A stretch of 64,000 nucleotides of DNA, from assembly GCA_011109175.1 (NCBI GenBank), contig RDEW01000044.1:11791-75790 (forward strand), written 5' to 3'. The position numbers were made by a program, and so were the translations under genes. Origin of the DNA: Dicyema japonicum (lineage: Eukaryota > Animalia > Dicyemida). The notes beneath the pieces are model-generated. The model saw nothing but the letters and a program-made list of their open reading frames with translations. It had not been told where the DNA came from and did no database searches. Shown here in pieces: positions 1,496-12,697 of the stretch. How positions within the stretch are numbered: position 1 is the stretch's first letter; every line of letters begins with the position of its first letter.

Positions 1496-1604
1496 TTAAT
1501 TTTTTATTTATTTAATTTAAAAAAAATTAGACAATTTTTTTCAATAACAGATGTTGTTAACTTGAAAAATAAAATGATAAAGTAATCGATTTCATAATAT
1601 ACGA

Positions 1605-2337
1605 ATGACTAGTAACTCTATGATTGCATTCATTTATTCCGATTGCGCTTTAATTGCCTCTGATTGTGTTAAGGATAATGATATTCCTATGCGTGACTCT
1701 TAGTAATTTACATATAGCTGGCGATAACTTTTGCTACAGAATATTTCAAATCACCGATTTTATAGCAGTTGGGATATCAGGGGTAGAAATCGGAATTATA
1801 AACTTATACTATGAGTCATTCAACATAATATAGTTTCTGTCATCATTAACAGATAGTGAACATTATTATAAGGAATCTCATGTTTCTTTTTCGTTATCAT
1901 ATTTTTCCGGTAAACTCGCTGCTTATATGAAAAGTCATCGATATCCGACGGTTTGACGTTAATCTATTTTAGGAAGCTATAGTCATTGGCCTTGATAAGG
2001 ATATGAAGGTTAATCTGATGAAAATAGACACTAAGGGAAATTTGGCTGTGAAAGATATAGCTTGCATTGGAGCTAGATCAGCAGAGGTTCAGAGAATTTT
2101 AACTGAATAGTATTTATGTTCTCATTGCTTTTAGTGTTATAGGTTACCATCCTGAAAATACTGATCTTGCTGTTCTAATCTCCTTTAATCTTTTATTTAA
2201 TGAATCAACGTTTAAACGCTTTGGGGTTTTCACCAAGAGTATTAGCGTATATTTTTTTAGTGTGGATTATTGGTCCTTCTATGGAAAAGGGATGTTTCAT
2301 AACTATTAACAGAGATAGAAAAATCCAATTTGTTTAA
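1605..2337 (+). CDS. Divergent proteasome subunit-like (Ntn-hydrolase fold) protein, paralog A, 6 exons, ~204 aa
   Basis: Not in the ORF track. ATG at 1605; removing GT-AG introns 1693-1717, 1833-1856, 1951-1972, 2110-2134 and 2239-2260 gives an open frame to TAA 2335-2337: MTSNSMIAFIYSDCALIASD...YRIFQITDFIAVGISG...EAIVIGLDKDMKVNLMKIDTKGN...ACIGARS. The pattern matches 20S proteasome subunits and is colinear with paralog B. Confidence 0.8.
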
Positions 2338-2389
2338 ATTATTTAAAATTTAATTTATTAAAATATTTCTTTTTATTTATTTCAAATTC

Positions 2390-3640
2390 GTCTTATATTG
2401 TGGTGTTGTGGCTTTATGTTACCTGAAAAGATCAGAATGGCTTCCATCAAGTTTGATAGGAGAGACCAGAAGGGCATTCGTCCATGAAGGACAATATTTT
2501 TGAATTGTTAAAAAATCAAAGATTTTAATAGGACGACTTTACTAAGAATTATTGAAAATATACTATAATTACAATGTCTCTGACAATTAAGCTGTTGTCC
2601 TAAGAAATGACCCAAAAAACTGGAAACTGAGTCGAAATCCACATATGACTTGGTCTTAGTGACACTAAACAATGCAACTATAAGTCATATGCACGTAATA
2701 GGTCGATGAGAGGCTCAATCCATGAAACTTTTGAAATTTAGTTTTTTAATTGTAGCTTTGTACTAAGAATTCTAGTTCTGTTCAATTTATTATACTGAAC
2801 AACATATGCTTCCTTGTTTTTAAAAATATTTGCGAGTTAGTAACCCTACTAATATCTCTCTGTTTCTTCTAAAGGTATAATGACCAAGTTCTTCCAAATT
2901 TTGTGTAAATATGATTCAAAGTGGGAACACAGTATATCCGACGCTTAATGTCTCAAAACTTCTTAGATCAAACGTCTTCTTAGTTCATTACTTCCATTAC
3001 TTGCAAGATGGGTTAAATTTGAGACCTCATCCTGAAATCACCGCATCAACCATCCGAAAGCTTGGTTTTATCTTAAATATTTAAAAACGATTGGATGATT
3101 CTGTTCACTAGCCTCTTCCACTCCTTAGGAATCTCAAATCAGCATTGAGAACATCACAAACATCATAGTTGACGTTTACAGAATCTTCCCTGATGCTTAT
3201 GTAGTCTTCAGTGATGGCATCTTTCTGTGTGCAGACGGTTGAAGACAAACCTGTTCGCCAGGTCCCAATATTTTCTCCTTTCAATAACCTCGACTCTAGA
3301 AGATTTAAAATCCACACGTGCTAAAGTTAGGCATATTTGTAATAGGATATATCCATAAAGGGAGTTCATAGTGACGATCAAGTGGATTACTGCAAACCAG
3401 GGGTACCCAAACTTTTTCATCCAGCGCCCCCTTTGCATAATCAAAAACAATATTTTCCCCAAGCAAGTAATATGAATTTATTTCCAAGAATTATTGACGC
3501 AGCAAGTTGCAAATAAATTCTATATTTTTCAATATTAAACATAAACTATTCTCCACATGCGATATCTCAAATGAACTTATATTCTGAGAAGGTTGCTACA
3601 TTTCTGATATCAATACTTCTAGAATTGATGGAATAAGTTA
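2390..3640 (-). other. Possible multi-exon gene or pseudogene of unknown function
   Basis: Overlapping minus-strand ORFs (3108-3487) in non-repetitive, coding-like sequence with several ~22-29 nt GT..AG segments. I could not build a complete frame. Confidence 0.25.
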
Positions 3641-3834
3641 TTCACCAATTGTGTGAGGCTCCCCAATGATTAAAGTGATTTTATGAAAACAAAATTTTTT
3701 GAAAATATTGTCTCTAACCTGCGTTGACCGTTTTGTTTTTTCTTTAGTTTTTGGTCCGCTAAATTTATAAAATATAAAAACCGTTTGTATATTCTTTTTC
3801 AATCTGGAAAGTTTCATAACATTGTTTAAAATTA

Positions 3835-4060
3835 TTCCAAAGACCAGAATAACCAAACTAACCAACTCCTTGATCCTTCGAACGTTCCAGAACTTGTCTC
3901 CAGGAAACAACATTGTACCCATGGGAAAGAATAGTTGCATCCTCTTGATGCCGGCCAAGAATTGGGCGTCTCCTAAGAAAGGTGGACCCAATGATGCGAT
4001 CGGAGGAAAGGAAAATAATATTTGACCAACTAACCACATATCACCACATGGCGTCACGCG
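3835..4060 (-). mobile_element. SINE-like non-autonomous element, family 2
   Basis: Shares its head (GTG.CGCCATGTGGTG..TGTGGTT) and core (GCATCAT..G.TCCACCT.TC.TAGG.GACGCCCA...GGCCGGCA) with 16131-16460. Its tail GGATCAAG...GTTAGTTTGGTT matches the 3' end of the LINE at 35314-35375. Confidence 0.6.
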
Positions 4061-4184
4061 CCTCGTTTGAAAACAACTTTGGGCATATAGAGAAAAAAAG
4101 TTTTTTTACAAAATATATTTTTTAATTTTTTATAAATCGTGAAAAAAATTAAAAAATATTATTACAATATCCAATTATACTTTT

Positions 4185-4730
4185 AAGAAATGGCCAGTCC
4201 TTGACATTATAACATAAACTCGATTATACAACTCGCTAGTGAAACTTATACTACTATGTAACGCTGGTACCTGGGCATGCTCAAGAAATAAATTAAGGAT
4301 GCTTATTGCATTTCATAGAGACCAACTACGGCAGATGATGTTCAAAAGAAGTTATGCGAGGATGTTATCTAATCTTCTCTATAAAAGGACGAGGACCTCT
4401 GAAATTTTAAATGAAATTCTGGATACACGATAGAGGCTTTTCGGCCATATTCTGCGACTAAACCTAGATTTCCCCGCGAGCGTAGCCATGGAGGATTATT
4501 TCATGTTTGAAGCCCCCCGTTTCCATGGTCGCCCAAGGACGACACTGCCAGTCGTTCTCGACGAGGACTTCAAAGAAATGGGACGGCATCTTGGAAGTTG
4601 AAAGGATCTGACTGGTTACGTACTGCGGCTTTGAATAAGAGGAAGTGATTGAAATTAACTATGAATTGCTAACTCGTGTTGCACATGCTTTGTCAAGTCC
4701 TATGTCATAGCGATAAGTGCAAATAATAAT
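4185..4730 (+). mobile_element. RTE-like non-LTR retrotransposon, 3' fragment (family B), decayed
   Basis: Translates as LILLCNAGTW..AFHRDQLR..LFGHILRL..PASVAMEDYF..GRPRTTLPVVLDED with a (TAA)n tail. Confidence 0.75.
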
Positions 4731-4773
4731 AAATGGCCTGTTTTCTGTCGTCAGGAAGACATGATGATTGTCC

Positions 4774-6085
4774 AATTTCTTACAAATACGCACGTAAATT
4801 CACTTGGTGACCACAACGTAAGCGCGTCAAGTGGACACTAATTTTTTTTGAATTAATGAATCACAATAATTCATTAAAGCTTTCGCTTCCGAGGTTAAAT
4901 GGAGAAATATGTCCACCCTCGCCATTCCAATTCCTTACAAATACGCACGTAAATTCACTTGGTGACCACAACGTAAGCGCGTCAAGTGGACACTAATTTT
5001 TTTTGAATTAATGAATCACAATAATTCATTAAAGCTTTCGCTTCCGAAGTTAAATGGAGAAATATATTCACCCTCGCCATTTTCATCACACATTCCTCCG
5101 TTGGAGAAATCACTTCATTCATTGGCGGAAGACCTTTCACTGTGAAAATTTTCACCTAACTGATTGTCGTTTAGAGAAGCTTAATGTTTATTTGTCTAAA
5201 AGCTTATTGACCAGCAAGAAAAAAGCTGTTAGGAATAGTGTTTTTGGTGATATATACAAGTCCTATAAATTTGTTAAAACGAGCTAATGCGAGCTAATAG
5301 GTGTTTGCTGTGAATGGCGGAAACACAAATACGAGTGGCGGGTAACGTAAAATAAAATTAACCACATCATTTAGGGATTAGAAATGTGGTATGTGTCGTA
5401 GNAAATTTGTTAAAACGAGCTAATGCGAGCTAATAGGTGTTTGATGTGAATGGCGGAAACACTTGTAGGATTACAAATACAAGTGGCGGGTAACGTAAAA
5501 TAAAATTAACCACATCATTTAGGGATTAGAAATGTGGTATGTCTCGTAGTTGTGCGCCTGTAATAATTTACAAATTGGAGCTTGTGTCCGATCGCAACTT
5601 AGCGTTTTATCAGGTTATTCTTGTGTCCATATGTATTCAAAATTAATTTACATGTCAGAAGAAATGGGAGAAACTTTGACTTCCTCTACGTTAATAACAA
5701 GTTTCATTACCTCCAAAAATGCACACTCGTATTTCAGATGTAAGTGTTCAACCAGACAGTTTCGTTTGTGTATGTAGTTCGTACGAATAAGCATAAGATT
5801 TTCGAATTGAGTGTCGTAGAGAAAATACGAGTCTTTTTTTTTTATTCAGGGATTTTTAATGNCAAAGTTAATTTACATGTAGGAAGAAATGGGAGAAACT
5901 TTGACTTCCTCTACGTTAATAACAAGTTTCATTACCTCCAAAAATGCACACTCGTATTTCAGATGTAAGTGTTCAACCAGACAGTTTCGTTTGTGTATGT
6001 AGTTCGTACGAATAAGCATAAGATTTTCGAATTGAGTGGCGTAGAGAAAATACGAGTCTTCTTTTTTTATTCAGGGATTTTTAAT
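4774..6085. repeat. Three consecutive tandem duplications (~135-225 bp units)
   Basis: 4774-4927/4928-5080; 5266-5400/5403-5550; 5640-5860/5863-6085. Two of them have an 'n' at the junction. Confidence 0.85.
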
Positions 6086-7387
6086 GAATTTATTACCATG
6101 GTAAATGACAATATGTGGGATTGTAATTTTAGCTTGAAGCTCTTGTAGGAAAATAAAAAGATAAAGAGCCAATAGTCTTCCAAAATTATTGAGAGTCATA
6201 TCTTCGTGTCCTTATCTAAGAAGAGACATTTTATTGCAAATCAGCAACAAAGCCGGTCCGCATTCGAATATTTTTTGAATTATGCAAACACGACACATAG
6301 AAAAAGTGTTTTTTAAAGAACAAATCTGACGCTTCAAGATGGAGAAACAACGATACTGCAGGGCTAAGTAGAGATGATCTTTTCTGGATTTGGGTGGAAT
6401 TTAAACGTTAAGGGAGGAAAACATCTCGATGATGAAAATGATGGTTCAGTGAATCTGTCTTATTATCCCATTCACAGGGAAAAAACACAACTTGACACGG
6501 ATTTGGTGGAAAGCTTAACAGTGTTAGTTTTTATGTTCCCAACATTAATCCCTTAGGTATGACCGGCAGCTAGATATAGGTAATTTCATACGTTTCTGAT
6601 AACCGTTAAGAGGCCACCATCAATCCCTTAACCAGTTTTTGCAGATTACAAAATAACTTTTTACTAAGGTAACATTACAGGATTAAAAAAAATTTACACG
6701 CTCTTTCCTATCAAACAACTACAGAAAGTGATCCGATGGCCTCATGTGATCCAAGTGTTTCCAGTAACACGATGAAATGAGAAAAAAAATCGTCGTTTTC
6801 TTATCTCTATTCAAGGAGTTCACATAATTAACGACTGAATGTTTTCTTCACTATTTGCTGATATAGATTGACTTTTGTGACATTGGAAAATCTCTTTATT
6901 TCTTAGAGAGAAAGTTAAAATATAAATTTTTAATAGAAATACAATTTATCAGGCTCCACCATCCAAGAGACAGTTTTATTGTCACAGACGATTGCAAGGC
7001 GTTGTGAGAGCTTCTTTCACTTGGGTTTCTGTCTCGTGTCGCGATTATATTTTCGAATTTATTGATAATTCTTGTATCTATTCTCTTAAGGAAACACTTG
7101 ATGAAAATCGCATCCCACGTTTTCTAATACTGTTTCTTCTAGAAATGTCCTTTAATAGGTCTCTCTTACAGATCCGGGTTTTGGATATGGCCTAGTTAAC
7201 TTCTCTCTGGGTTTACACGAAGAAAATTAATGTGAAAGTTCAAAAAGACATACAACTTTTTCGGTCCTCGCTTGAGGGATCGGATTTATTCGTAAAGATT
7301 ATTTCATCAGCCCCGACTGTTATAGGAAATGACGTTGATCATGAAGTTACTACTCATTTCTATATAAATTCCCTGCTTAACATAATA

Positions 7388-7579
7388 TGTCACGAGCCTA
7401 GGGTGTTACCGAGCCTAGGTGGTTTCTTCAAATAGACACTAATTCCCTATGCTGTTTTTATTTAATAAAAAAATTTAATTTCCTTTATTTATCTCAAACA
7501 ATAAATTAATTTTCAATCTTTATCGAAAAATAACCTAAGTTTAACCACCTAGGCTCGGTAACATCCTAGGCTCGTGACA
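7388..7579. mobile_element. MITE with 37-bp terminal inverted repeats and TGT...ACA ends (Ginger-like)
   Basis: TGTCACGAGCCTAGGGTGTTACCGAGCCTAGGTGGTT at 7388 and AACCACCTAGGCTCGGTAACATCCTAGGCTCGTGACA ending at 7579 (1 mismatch), around an AT-rich core. Confidence 0.85.
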
Positions 7580-7762
7580 AAATAACCAATGGTTGTGACG
7601 AAATTAGTAAAGTATGTTTAAAAAGCCAATAAGTATTGTTCCATAGGATAGTCATATATGATGATAAGAAATACACTAACATTCAAGATGGTCTCTAGAT
7701 TTACAAATTTGTTGACTCTTTCATTAAAGAACTTTCGAAGACGATAGTAATCAAAAGAAAAA

Positions 7763-7834
7763 TGCATCAGCCGGGAATCGAACCCGGATCACAAGGTTGG
7801 AAGCCTTGCATAATAACCATTATACAACTGATGC
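7763..7834 (-). tRNA. tRNA-Gly (anticodon TCC)
   Basis: Reverse complement folds as a cloverleaf: acceptor GCATCAG/CTGATGC, anticodon arm CAAGG-CTTCCAA-CCTTG, T-arm CCGGG-TTCGATT-CCCGG. It is followed by a TTTTTCTTTT Pol III terminator. Confidence 0.95.
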
Positions 7835-9119
7835 ATTTTTTATTCATAACTATATAAAACAATAAATTTAAATTTCATAAATAATAAAATATTTTCAATA
7901 TTAAAATATGTCTGCTATTTGATAGCTCTTATTTGTGCAAAATTATCCAGAAAAAATTCTTTTAGTTTATTCCTCTTTCGCACGGTTTTGTGAACTTTCC
8001 AGAGATGGTTAGACTGGGATTTCAAAACTTGCAGGATTTTTGTTGCATATATTTTATGTTTTTGTAGCTTCCCTTGTCCGTGATGTTCCCATTTTTATAT
8101 CAAAAAAGTAGAAGGATTTGTTAGCTTCACATTTATTAATCGCTAGTAATCGTTATGATGAATTATCTTGTATTTGTCAGGTTTTCTGAACTCTCATAGA
8201 TATTTTAATCACCTGATCTGAGTTTGCTATGGAATATATCATCTTTAGATCGACTTTTTCACGTTTCTGACTATTTTACTTTGAGTTATAATTTGACTCT
8301 TAGTAGCGTCTGAAAATATCATAAGTGACAACGAAAGAACAAATGCGATATTTTAAATAATTTATTTTTATTTTTAAAATTATTATTTATGTCTCGATTT
8401 ATAATTGTTTTCCTAATTTAAACATAAATAAATAACACGACGTTCTCGATTCCAGGTTTCCAATCTAAAAGGATGTCACTTCTCAGACGGCCCTTTATTG
8501 GCCTTACTAATCTATTCTGATACCTTATCAGAAGGACGACATCGATGTATGTTTTCACTAGAGACAAAGCAATCACTTTTACATTCCTCTGCAACACCAC
8601 TGTCAGATCAACTACTAGGAATAATTACTCGAGTAGGAATAAAGGACATGACGACTTCCTAGTTGCTACAATCTCTCTTCCTCTGCGGAATAAAATCTCT
8701 CATTACTAATGAACATAAGAGATGCACATAACCCCTCAGTATAAAGGATTTTGTATTTTCTTGAAGGACTTGCAAAATTATCAAGACATGTTGAGTGGAT
8801 ATACAAATGCAAAAAATCAAACCTAGTTGANGTATGTTGTCACTAGAGACAAAGCAATCACTTTTACATTCCTCTGCAACACCACTGTCAGATCAACGAC
8901 TAGGAATAATGACTCGAGTAGGAATAAAGGAGATGACGACCCTTTAGTTGCTTCAATCTCTCTTCCTCTGCGGAATAAAATCTCTCATTACTAATGAACA
9001 TAAGAGATGCACATAACCCCTGAGTATAAAGGATTTTGTATTTTCTTGAAGGACTTGCAAAATTATCAAGACATGTTGAGTGGATATACAAATGCGAAAA
9101 ATCCAACCTAGTTAAAAAA

Positions 9120-10040
9120 TAAAATGGCCGTCACTAGAAGAATCCTTATATTGGTATCCTGGAACCTGTAATCCTCAACAATACACGTGGACACTGTATA
9201 GCATGGGTTCAAGATTGGTAGATGGATGGAGACATTCCAGAAAGCTCGGCTCCCTCCTCGGGGATGGTGAGGACATATCCCAGAGGAAAGTACTATCGAC
9301 GGTCGCACTGAACAGGATAAAGACGGATTGGTTGGCTGACAGACAAGTAACGATCGCGCTTCGTTTGCGCATCTATAATGCTTTCGTGAAACCGGTCCTG
9401 CTATGTATCTCTTCCTGCTGGGGAATCTCGGTCTCAGAAGCCAAAAATCTTAACTCCTTCCACCGAAGGCAATTACGAATACTTTGTGGGCTACAATGGG
9501 CGACACGGATCAATAATGAGGCACTGTACCGAAAGTGCTCAACGCGACCTGTGATNATATATCTCTTCCTGCTGGGGAATCTCGGTCTCAGAAGCCAAAA
9601 ATCTTAACTCCTTCCACCGAAGGCAATTACAAATACTGTGTGGGTTACAATGGCCGACACGGATCAACAATGAGGCACTGTACCGAAAGTGCTCAACGCG
9701 ACCTGTGACATGAGATGTGGTAGAGGCCCGATGGAGAATGTTTGGACACGTCCTACGGATGGGTCCCACATCACCTGCAAATTTGGCTATGGAGGAATAT
9801 TTCGCTGCAAGTGGAAGTAAATATCGTAGACGCCCGTGTACTACGCTACCGGGGGTGCTGGATGAGGATCTTAAGGAAATCAACCGGAGGCTCGTAATTG
9901 GGGAGGATCTGGATTCTATGAGAAGTTTGGCATGTAACAAGAGAGGATGGACGAGATTTATCGGTAAAATCGCTTTAAGTGCCGCACGTGTGGAAACATA
10001 ACAATTATGTTTCTAGGATAGTTGCCTATAATAATAATCA
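9120..10040 (+). mobile_element. RTE-like non-LTR retrotransposon, 3' part (family B)
   Basis: LRLRIYNAFVKPVLL, SFHRRQLR, RWRMFGHVLRM, RRPCTTLP; (TAA)n tail. Confidence 0.8.
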
Positions 10041-10231
10041 ATACACAGTAATGTCTTGATTAAAGTGCATGAAAAAAATTCTAATGGGTCGATTATTCCT
10101 TGAAAAAAACCTATCATTTTGAATTTCAACTATCTTAATAGCGTGAAGAGTATTAACAGACAAAAAAGAACTTCAACCAATTAGCCACATAGCACCACAT
10201 GCCATACTTTATTTTTTTAAATTTATTACAT

Positions 10232-10780
10232 ACAGAAGAAGCGCCGGAAGGGGAACACGTCATGCTGCTCTGAATGATGTGATCGTCAGAGCTCTGACGG
10301 CTTCAGGCTTCCCAGCACAGTTTGAACCGATGGGTCTTGATCGAGGAGATTGGAAGAGACCTGACGGGATGACCCTTTTCCCCTTCACGTCTGGAAGATC
10401 TTTGGTCTGGGACGCAACTTGCATAGACACGTTCTCAAGCACGAACATTTTTAAATCGGTTCAGACACCTGGAGCAGCTGCTTCGACTGCGGAAAACCTA
10501 AAAATCAAGAAATATTCTTGCCTCGGGGATCGCTACCGATTTACTCCTGTTGCGACCGAATCATCGGGAGCCGTTGGTCCAATGACGGCTGAATTCTTGC
10601 AAGAACTCGGAGGATTGCTTGCCAGAAAGAAAAGGGATCAACGAGAAGGGTTATGGCTAAGACAAAAGATTGGAATAGCCATACTCCGAGGGAACTCGTT
10701 CGCAATCCACGCAGCAGGCTTCCTCAACTGACATTTGTTTAATTGTTAAAAAAAATTTTTGTTAAAAAAAAAAATTATTA
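10232..10780 (+). mobile_element. CRE-clade non-LTR retrotransposon 3' end (restriction-like endonuclease)
   Basis: RHAALND..KRPDGMTLFPFTSGRSLVWDAT..K..KY..FTPVATE..G..G..LRQKIGIAILRGN, followed by an A-rich tail. Confidence 0.85.
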
Positions 10781-11984
10781 CATGTAAATCAAAAAATATT
10801 AAAAATTATATTTTAGAAATATTAAAACTAGGGCAAAATCCTGATGATTCAAGTTGTGATGCCTCCGGGATGAAATCTTACCGTGTGCATTCCGACTGAA
10901 GGTTCCACACATCTATGAAGCTTTGGGTATGCCTAGTAACACCTTCATCAGTTAATGATCACTGTGGAACCGAACCGTCTGTATTTGACCCAAACGCTAG
11001 AAAAAATAAAATTTGAATTTTTAAATAAATTTAATCTTCAAAATGTATACGTAACCATCGTTAATGTTCAATTTCCGGGGTCGTGTCCGACATATTAACC
11101 TAACTTAAACTAATTTTAGCCTTTTTAAATATAATAAAATTCTGATTTGTCTGATTTCAGTTAATTGAATTGACAGATTTAAGCATAAGACCTTTGAAAA
11201 CCGTTTTGACAGATATTAGTTCCTCATTCTAACTTAGCAGAACTTATCTATCACTTAGGCTTAAAGGTATATCTCAATTCCTCACTTGCGGTATAAGAAG
11301 TCTAATTAATTCGTTTAATGCTAATAAATGCGATCCTTTTTGGATGAGTCATAGATATTTAGTTTCTTATCCACAAGAAACCCAACTTTTCAGGAAGTAA
11401 AAAAATGTTACAATTTTAACTTATTTGAGTATGATTGACTCCCGAATTGATATGAAGACTAGATAATCTTATCTTTTCATCAAACAGTGATCGTATTAGA
11501 GGTCATCTAAGACACTTATTTACCACAAAAAGGCATGTCGTTTAGTTTACTCTAAAATCCGTGCGATAATGCTAGGTGTGTGATTCCATATAACTCTTGA
11601 CGTTCATTAGCTAGCAATAGAGAATTTAACTCGTGTAAACGTATGGTCACTTCTGATAGTAATTTCACATTTTGATCTCTGTGATGAGAACTTGAGAGAA
11701 CGTGCTCAACATGTTTTACCAAATCTGTGATAAATTGTTCAATAACAAGCAAAAAATGTACTTAAACGACCGACAACTAACACGTGGTTACAATTATGAG
11801 TAAATAAAATTCCATTAATGGGTATTTGATGAAATCGGAGGTTTGGTAATTGGATCGAAGATACGTGTAGTAAGGACTCTAGAGAGTACGGAAATAGCTA
11901 CACAATTAACATCAGGAACCACGTGAGTGTTCTTAATTTACGAAATTGTCATTTCCTACCAAAAAACAACCATTAAATTATATA

Positions 11985-12697
11985 TCAGTTTAAAATCATA
12001 TTTGCAATGTCGGAAATAAAGTTCCCCTTTTGAATTATCTGATTGAGGTACCAAACTGAATAAGTATGATGACTACTTGTATACTTTCCCAAGTTCGTCA
12101 AAGGCTCCGCATTGTAGAAGACATTGGAAGCTACCCGGATAGCATCATTAGTATCCGCCGGTCTGTCACTTCTTAGTCTACAGTGATGGAGTACATTTAC
12201 AAGCGAATTAAATCCCTCACCAACAGCTTTGCGCTAGATCCAATGCAAAAGACGTCGTTAGCGTAAACATTGGCTGTGACGTCAAAGCACATCAAACTAA
12301 TAGAATTCGACTCGACTCCGAGAATTAGCAACTCCTAAAGTACGCAATTCCCCCAAACTGTGTCAAATTTTCGTCCTTTCATATATTTTTGAAGTTGGGG
12401 TACGAAATGTCTCATCGGAATACAAATCCGATATTGTTGAAAATATTGGCTATTTTTTTAGTAAAAAAAAAACTTCGCGTAATATACGGATGCGTTGTGT
12501 AAGTCCAGAACTTCCCATTCCACACCAAACATTCCAACGGCGAGAGACTTTGTTATTTGAAATATCCTGATGCAAGGATCATCGCTATCTGAATGTAATA
12601 AAATGTCACATTGAGGAGTATCGTTATCACCTGCAGAGTCGGAGGCAATTATTGCACAGTTTGAGTATTTAAATGCAATAATCACGTTACTCGGCAT
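11985..12697 (-). CDS. Divergent proteasome subunit-like protein, paralog B, 6 exons, ~199 aa
   Basis: ORF 12458-12697 extended through introns 12589-12609, 12450-12473, 12335-12358, 12178-12200 and 12056-12076: MPSNVIIAFKYSNCAIIASD...IRIFQITKSLAVGMFG...YYANQYFQQYRICIP...ELLILGVES...FDVTANVYANDVFCIGS. Intron phases (1,2,0,2,1) are the same as in paralog A. Confidence 0.8.

Follow-up and report, generated by a model that had tools for sequence, protein, structure and literature searches.

Divergent proteasome-subunit-like genes without an alpha N-terminus or a catalytic threonine form a large family in Dicyema japonicum

A 64,000-nucleotide (nt) stretch of the genome of the dicyemid Dicyema japonicum (contig RDEW01000044.1, positions 11,791 to 75,790; hereafter the window) contains two genes, g1 (1605..2337, + strand) and g2 (11985..12697, − strand), whose spliced products are highly divergent relatives of the subunits of the 20S proteasome. 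They carry neither the N-terminal segment of alpha subunits nor the catalytic threonine of beta subunits, and they belong to a large family dispersed over the genome. The explanation that we favor, and consider fairly probable, is a maintained, dicyemid-specific family of bare, non-catalytic proteasome-subunit cores that are extra to the canonical set.

Gene structure of g1 and g2

The window has a G+C content of about 35%, and its open frames are interrupted every 90–140 nt by GT..AG gaps of 18–25 nt. Spliced models were obtained by an exhaustive search for stop-free models, ranked by the similarity between both loci, which gave a single consistent structure for each gene. g1 has six exons and encodes 204 amino acids (aa), ending in TAA; g2, likewise made up of six exons, yields a product of 200 aa and ends in TGA. 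The g1 exons are located at 1605..1692, 1718..1832, 1857..1950, 1973..2109, 2135..2238 and 2261..2337 (+), and those of g2 at 12610..12697, 12474..12588, 12359..12449, 12201..12334, 12074..12177 and 11985..12055 (−), with the stop codon inside exon 6 in both. Exon 1 of g1 contains the Met start, strands S1-S2 and the motif MTSNSMIAFIYSDCALIASD; the motif in exon 1 of g2 is MPSNVIIAFKYSNCAIIASD. Exon 2 of g1 encodes the motif CYRIFQIT..G..G, and exon 4 encodes EAIVIGLD...ACIG together with a match to Pfam PF00227. The introns measure 25, 24, 22, 25 and 22 nt in g1 and 21, 24, 24, 23 and 18 nt in g2, with GT..AG borders in all ten. Intron 1 of g2 (12589–12609, 21 nt) can by chance be read through in frame.

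In both genes, exons 1 to 5 end in phases 1, 2, 0, 2 and 1, and the introns follow codons 29, 67, 99/98, 144/142 and 179/177 (g1/g2). The spliced products share 34% amino acid identity over 196 aa in an end-to-end alignment (local blastp, E 6e-42). The original prediction, made from the sequence alone, had placed two six-exon genes at these coordinates, with five introns shared in position and phase, and had described intact frames that align from end to end with most residues different. Independent spliced modelling recovered the same coordinates, put the introns at equal aligned codons in both models and found no frame break. The identical five intron positions recur in five more paralogues elsewhere in the genome, so a chance reading of the g1/g2 structure is ruled out.

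Relationship to the proteasome fold

In Pfam, exon 4 of g1 matches PF00227 at profile positions 107–149 (E 4.9e-4, 20.2 bits, below the cut-off of 22.4 bits). The same exon scores 18.7 bits in a whole-genome Pfam scan, in which a paralogue of g1 (C338; paralogues are referred to by C numbers) exceeds the cut-off with 30.8 bits. In all, PF00227 was reached by two of 12 exon-4 pieces. For profile comparison with hhalign, an alignment of 13 spliced family members was used as the query against alpha and beta profiles built from archaeal alpha/beta genes, mollusc-like PSMA7 proteins and canonical Dicyema subunits, the last modelled with a spliced profile aligner. The family matches the alpha profile over 161 columns (Prob 97.1, P 5.8e-11, score 76.1) and the beta profile over 162 columns (Prob 95.9, P 6.1e-9, score 62.0), both in the expected register. 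The maximum scores in 150 column shuffles were 26.2 (alpha) and 24.3 (beta), and reversing the alignment gave scores of 12 and 17. In an ESM Atlas feature search with contiguous N-terminal pieces, PF00227 was present in 22 of the 30 nearest named clusters for C101 and in 25 of 30 for g2 (74 aa). Profile searches, on which the original prediction had staked its reading, do return the proteasome fold with scores far above the shuffles, and at the sequence level the fold of the family can be taken as established.

Loss of class-defining features

Exon 1 is the best conserved part of the family, with a mean pairwise identity of 64% against 27–43% for the other exons. The N-terminal consensus is M-[TSP]-[ST]-N-x-I-I-A-F-x-Y-S-D-C-A-I-I-A-S-D-S. 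Cys 14, 35 and 130, D20, G51 and G132 are invariant across nine full-length members, and the core-strand motifs RIFQI, G..G, E.I..G.D and CIG are kept in the family.

20S alpha subunits carry an N-terminal gate/H0 segment of about 30–35 aa, and active beta subunits carry Thr1. In the hhalign register, family residues 4–7 lie opposite alpha residues 37–40, and therefore the whole gate/H0 segment is absent. The alpha signature PF10584 matched eight canonical alpha loci genome-wide and zero family loci, and an archaeal alpha profile found no match in a six-frame translation of the entire 64-kb window. In-frame stops are present 8 codons (g1) and 4 codons (g2) upstream of the ATG, and the start Met is conserved among paralogues. 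Allelic differences in g1 number 12 in the 70 nt before the ATG, compared with 10 across 615 coding nt. Because of the conserved Met, the nearby stops, the lack of an alpha-profile match in the window and the excess of allelic differences upstream, an additional upstream exon in g1 or g2 is unlikely. No alpha N-terminal motif that such an exon could restore was found in the window or adjoining any family locus, in agreement with the proposal that these proteins have no alpha N-terminus.

The proposal that they have no catalytic Thr also held up. In the register with beta subunits, Asn4 occupies the Thr1 position, in line with family N-termini of the form M-[TSP]-[ST]-N. D20 is the equivalent of Asp17. 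The Lys33 equivalent (R37) is Arg in eight of nine members and Lys in C79, and of the beta Gly128-Ser129-Gly130 motif only G132 is left, followed by variable residues. The family therefore shows neither mark of a catalytic beta subunit, that is, Thr1 exposed by propeptide cleavage at G|TT or the combination of Asp17, Lys33 and GSG, of which the Asp17 equivalent alone is kept.

Canonical proteasome subunits in the genome

In spliced models, the eight loci marked by PF10584 are PSMA1–7 and a second PSMA7. The Dicyema PSMA7 exon shares 62–64% identity with mollusc PSMA7, indicating no unusual divergence of the canonical subunits of Dicyema. Among the beta subunits, the largest exon at the beta3 locus (C68) has PSMB3 as its best PDB match (E 5.6e-12), and the largest exon at the beta4 locus (C323:1854k) has human PSMB2 (yeast C11). 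The beta6 orthologue (C13) is most related to human PSMB1 and yeast C5 in the PDB, and the beta7 orthologue (C146:821k) matches yeast PRE4 and human PSMB4, its two top matches being unnamed proteasome beta chains. We read the loci with a mature TT(T) motif as accounting for beta1, beta2 and beta5. With all 14 canonical subunits found outside the g1/g2 family, the family genes are extra.

These assignments bear directly on the possibility that g1 and g2 are simply two canonical non-catalytic beta orthologues that have evolved fast. Beta3 and beta4 likewise have a length of about 200 aa and neither Thr1 nor a propeptide, and dicyemids are known for fast sequence evolution (PMC6543705). However, clear orthologues of beta3, beta4, beta6 and beta7 are found elsewhere by their best PDB matches, g1 and g2 are mutual relatives within a much larger family, and single g1/g2 exons match nothing in the PDB. 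Canonical beta orthology was thus rejected, and we consider it extremely improbable.

Several further features of the canonical genes were observed. PSMA7 (alpha4) occurs twice, at C369:38 kb and C57:800 kb, and the C369 copy has a two-exon internal repeat beside an assembly gap. In canonical beta5 (C345, about 336.6 kb, −), the most conserved stretch, ..TDSRATAGAVIGSS.. (Asp17 region), lies in a shifted frame, as does the most conserved stretch ..FKYKYGYDV.. of canonical alpha1/PSMA6 (C323, about 233.7 kb, +). Both shifts involve 1–2 extra bases on either side (net +3), and the straight frame gives unrelated residues; possible causes are paired indels of the assembly, frameshifts that truly compensate each other, or an event at the RNA level. 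Divergent beta5-like genes that form a second family, separate from that of g1 and g2 and additional to beta1–beta7, are present at C31:32.7 kb, C212:810 kb and C132:0.2 kb. Their N-termini, such as ATTILAMKYRGGVLLAADSRRT, keep the TT motif.

Family size and mode of expansion

The size of the g1/g2 family was estimated by searching the genome with the g2 N-terminus, g1 exon 4 and profiles of both. These searches retrieved at least 25 loci, spread over about 21 scaffolds, and a clear exon 4 is present in 20 of them. The scaffold that contains the window (C317) carries four members in its first 25 kb, namely at about 0–0.5 kb, at 2.1–2.6 kb, g1 and g2. The pair described in the original prediction is therefore real as to its two members, but it is part of a large family. 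The proposed lineage-specific expansion of non-canonical proteasome-fold proteins is supported by this count and by the profile-level fold match.

Paralogues were modelled by depth-first search and with a profile-guided spliced aligner. Seven members (g1, g2, C317b, C35b, C334, C61 and C79) are intact with all five introns, and C101 and C338 are intact without intron 1, giving at least nine intact members. The remaining loci are partial, have odd or non-canonical splice sites, are fragments or are interrupted by assembly gaps. g1 forms a subfamily with C61, C101, C338 and C317a/b, and g2 with C35a/b, C334 and C356.

Some duplications are recent. C35a and C35b share 96% identity across 3.1 kb, and the pairs C348/C356 and C168/C214 are each about 95% identical. 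In older copies, homology is confined to the gene itself, introns included, and the flanks can be aligned in recent segmental duplicates only. This indicates DNA-level duplication with birth and death, and neither retroposition nor carriage as transposon cargo. Transposon carriage was rejected, since the flanks are not shared among old paralogues and a shared repeat of 350–500 bp near several copies is a remnant resembling a long interspersed nuclear element (LINE) that lies outside the genes. In the window, this type of dispersed repeat occupies 10301–10806, again outside genes, and is 90–95% identical to copies beside the members C356, C348 and C338 and 80% identical to a copy at C332.

Parent subunit of the family

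Compared with single Dicyema proteins in hhalign, the family is closest to PSMA4 (P 3.5e-5), followed by PSMA3, PSMA7 and PSMA6 (about 1e-4). Five of the seven alpha types fall between P 3.5e-5 and 1.3e-3, PSMA5 and PSMA2 are at about 0.07, and no type is prominent. The best full-length beta protein is beta3 (P 9e-3), and the others are worse. The original prediction had noted a likeness to alpha-1/PSMA6. The resemblance to alpha subunits is confirmed in general, but there is no special affinity to PSMA6. The family is not orthologous to any one of alpha1–alpha7, each of which has its own locus.

In a maximum likelihood tree (IQ-TREE, posterior mean site frequency model), the family forms one clade (support 100/100) whose stem measures 2.64 changes per site. 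Its neighbours are PSMA3 and PSMA1 of Dicyema, a placement with unstarred support, and it lies outside the beta clade (100/99). Intron positions projected on the alpha/beta profile columns give scattered near-matches to PSMA2, PSMA4, PSMA5, PSMA6, beta5 and beta6, no better than chance. Overall, the sequence evidence leans towards an alpha over a beta parent.

Descent from a propeptide-less, non-catalytic beta subunit of about 200–205 aa, similar to beta3/PSMB3 or beta4/PSMB2, is possible but doubtful. Under such an origin, the missing alpha N-terminus would need no explaining. The length of 200–204 aa and the start at S1 are as in beta3 and beta4, and a short loop precedes the I.G.D strand (a gap of 7 residues against alpha and 3 against beta). 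The N-terminal exon of beta3 is the best non-family exon in the genome for the family hidden Markov model (E 0.03), one of the nearest Atlas clusters bears the name beta 3, and the approximately unbiased test does not reject a clade of the family with beta (p 0.34). By contrast, the hhalign profile score is 76 for alpha and 62 for beta, the single alpha proteins of five types score better than any beta protein, and the tree places the family by PSMA3 and PSMA1. In addition, the motif preceding helix H3 is C-I-G, similar to A-I-G of alpha subunits and not to the G-S-G of beta subunits.

Comparison with known proteasome systems

The 20S alpha subunits (PF00227 core plus PF10584) resemble the family in their core fold, which aligns over 161 columns (P 5.8e-11), and in being non-catalytic. 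They also share an A/C-I-G motif and a K/R-I-F/Y-x-I strand, and the tree puts the family on the alpha side, where the nearest relatives are Dicyema PSMA3 and PSMA1 by tree and PSMA4 by hhalign. They differ in the N-terminal YDR...FSP.G..Q.EYA, helix H0 and the gate, all absent in the family, whose RPFG loop is also shorter. Moreover, the divergence of the family goes far beyond that between any alpha types, it has at least 25 copies, and the seven alphas have their own genes. Beta3 (PSMB3) and beta4 (PSMB2) are similar to the family in having about 200 aa, a start near S1, little or no propeptide, no Thr1 and an Asp17 equivalent. Unlike them, the family lies away from beta in hhalign and in the tree, and the Dicyema orthologues of both are located at C68 and C323.

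HslV, Anbu and BPH are stand-alone prokaryotic proteasome homologues that consist of a bare N-terminal nucleophile (Ntn) core of about 175–240 aa, form their own rings and keep the N-terminal Thr. The Dicyema family is comparable in its bare core without an alpha-type N-terminal gate. It differs in having Asn in place of Thr and five spliceosomal introns, and its place is among the 20S subunits of eukaryotes and archaea. The sequences give no sign of horizontal transfer.

Lineage-specific 20S isoforms are known from Drosophila, with testis-specific alpha and beta paralogues, and from vertebrates (PSMA8 and PSMB11); these isoforms are testis- or thymus-specific. Like the Dicyema family, they are extra duplicates beyond the canonical 14 in one lineage. 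However, they keep the hallmarks of a parent that is easily assigned. The Dicyema family is many times larger, has shed the termini that define each class and points to no single parent.

The family could nevertheless supply alternative, stage- or cell-type-specific subunits that replace canonical alpha (or beta3/beta4-like) subunits in 20S-like rings, whose gate would then be open or altered. Homology to the fold of ring subunits extends across about 160 columns, the core-strand motifs are retained, and many paralogues under purifying selection would fit interchangeable isoforms. Several features make such replacement unlikely. Alpha and beta are closer to each other (P 1e-34) than the family is to either of them (P about 1e-10), and the alpha N-terminal segment, which aids ring contacts and gating, is absent. 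The canonical Dicyema subunits are conserved, as in PSMA7 with its 62–64% identity to molluscs, so that their contact surfaces would have to accommodate very different partners. More than 25 copies at 30–60% identity are far beyond seven ring positions, and known 20S isoforms are 50–70% identical to the parent with hallmarks kept.

Selection and gene activity

The ratio of non-synonymous to synonymous substitution rates (dN/dS) ranges from 0.25 to 0.77 among paralogues. The proportion of non-synonymous differences (pN) is below that of synonymous differences (pS) by Fisher's test in g1 versus g2 (P 4e-8), g1 versus C61 (9e-6), g2 versus C35b (2e-8) and C35b versus C356 (8e-5). Among public runs, the stretch is contained only in four from one 2019 study, whose contigs run across g1 with its introns in place, about 97% identical, and thus represent genomic DNA of another allele. 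Between the two g1 alleles, the frame is kept without any indel, and 6 synonymous changes stand against 4 non-synonymous ones (dN/dS 0.17; binomial P 0.008 versus neutrality). The computation of dN/dS envisaged in the original prediction thus yields purifying selection both among paralogues and between alleles.

The open frames of g1 and g2 and all ten splice sites are intact at saturated dS (above 1.8). From this, together with pN below pS and the low allelic dN/dS, we conclude that g1 and g2 are probably functional coding genes under moderate constraint. The variant stretch extends over window positions 1504–2450, with 24 differences in 845 nt (about 2.8%), which reach their highest density immediately before the start codon of g1. 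This value exceeds the published genome-wide heterozygosity of D. japonicum of 1.24% (PMC6736024).

Several results weigh against the proposal of a maintained proteasome-like family. Neither single exons nor an exon profile gave a proteasome match in the PDB (phmmer/hmmsearch), the exons being too short and divergent. A 68-column N-terminal profile searched exhaustively against 1.84 billion representative proteins found no true relative and only two spurious repeat proteins. As a consequence, the fold assignment depends on locally built profiles. dN/dS is not significantly below 1 for C35b versus C334 and is about 0.7–0.8 in some paralogue pairs, which, together with several fragmentary loci, indicates that part of the wider family is decaying. 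The argument for transcription and splicing of g1 and g2 is entirely comparative, the public reads being genomic DNA, and a role as non-catalytic scaffold or regulator is something that we only infer.

If this decay extended to all copies, they would be unexpressed pseudogene relics of an old duplication burst. The public runs over g1 contain genomic DNA only, several loci are fragmentary or have no canonical splice sites, copies lie at repeat-rich contig ends beside LINE remnants, and some pairs have dN/dS near 0.75. We nonetheless hold this to be very unlikely. The frames and ten splice sites of g1 and g2 are intact although dS is saturated, pN is significantly below pS, the g1 alleles show 6 synonymous and 4 non-synonymous differences without an indel, and the 12 allelic differences in 70 nt upstream contrast with 10 in 615 coding nt.

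Proposed origin, role and significance

In the scenario that we favor, a 20S proteasome subunit gene was duplicated repeatedly at the DNA level, introns included, to give at least 25 dicyemid loci. Each gene encodes only a roughly 200-aa Ntn-fold core that starts at S1, with Asn at the place of Thr1. The alpha N-terminal gate/H0 of roughly 35 aa is gone, the Asp17 equivalent D20 is kept, and Arg stands at Lys33. Such proteins would neither cleave peptides by the proteasome mechanism nor gate a pore. Birth-and-death evolution would account for recent duplicates of 95–96% identity beside old subfamilies, fragments and intron losses, with only the S1-S2 hairpin tightly held. The family is not among the 14 standard ring positions, since each position has its own conserved gene. 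On balance, we lean towards non-catalytic structural or regulatory proteins that may act through subunit-fold contacts, either as their own oligomers or bound to proteasome components.

The three Cys and Asn4, Asp20 and Arg37 conserved around the former active-site region leave room for a new site. One speculative and rather improbable extension is that the old active-site cleft has become a new, non-threonine site formed by Asn4, Asp20, Cys35, Arg37 and Cys130, with Cys14 and the S1-S2 hairpin also held. The proteins might then form gate-less rings of their own as a dicyemid-specific particle or binding module, with diverging paralogues for different clients or host-facing roles.

To our knowledge, the 20S subunit genes of eukaryotes are nearly always the same 14, and any isoforms beyond these are few and recognisable. 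In D. japonicum, whose genome is among the most reduced known in animals, a proteasome-subunit core is present in 25 or more additional copies that have shed both class-defining features and diverged beyond the distance between alpha and beta, still under purifying selection. The family may represent a natural experiment in repurposing an essential protease subunit as a pseudo-enzyme. The D. japonicum assembly comprises 67.5 Mb in 377 scaffolds, with 36.7% GC, a mean intron of 38 bp and about 5,000 predicted genes (PMC6736024). If expressed, the family would be among the larger gene families of this species. Apart from myxozoans, D. japonicum is the sole animal reported to have introns under 30 bp (PMC13644364). 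A ciliate source, which introns of this size would also suggest, is contradicted by the use of standard stop codons. Standard annotation misses the family because introns of 18–25 nt break every frame, a warning for gene counts in micro-intron genomes. Such a proteasome-like family is not mentioned in the D. japonicum genome paper (PMC6736024), in which the word 'proteasome' is absent, or in a full-text literature search on Dicyema and proteasome, whose single hit was irrelevant.

Other features between g1 and g2

The window segment between the two genes also contains a tRNA-Gly gene (anticodon TCC) at 7762–7835 (−). Remnants of a non-long-terminal-repeat (non-LTR) retrotransposon are present at 9200–10800, including an open reading frame resembling a reverse-transcriptase C-terminus and another retroelement-like open reading frame.

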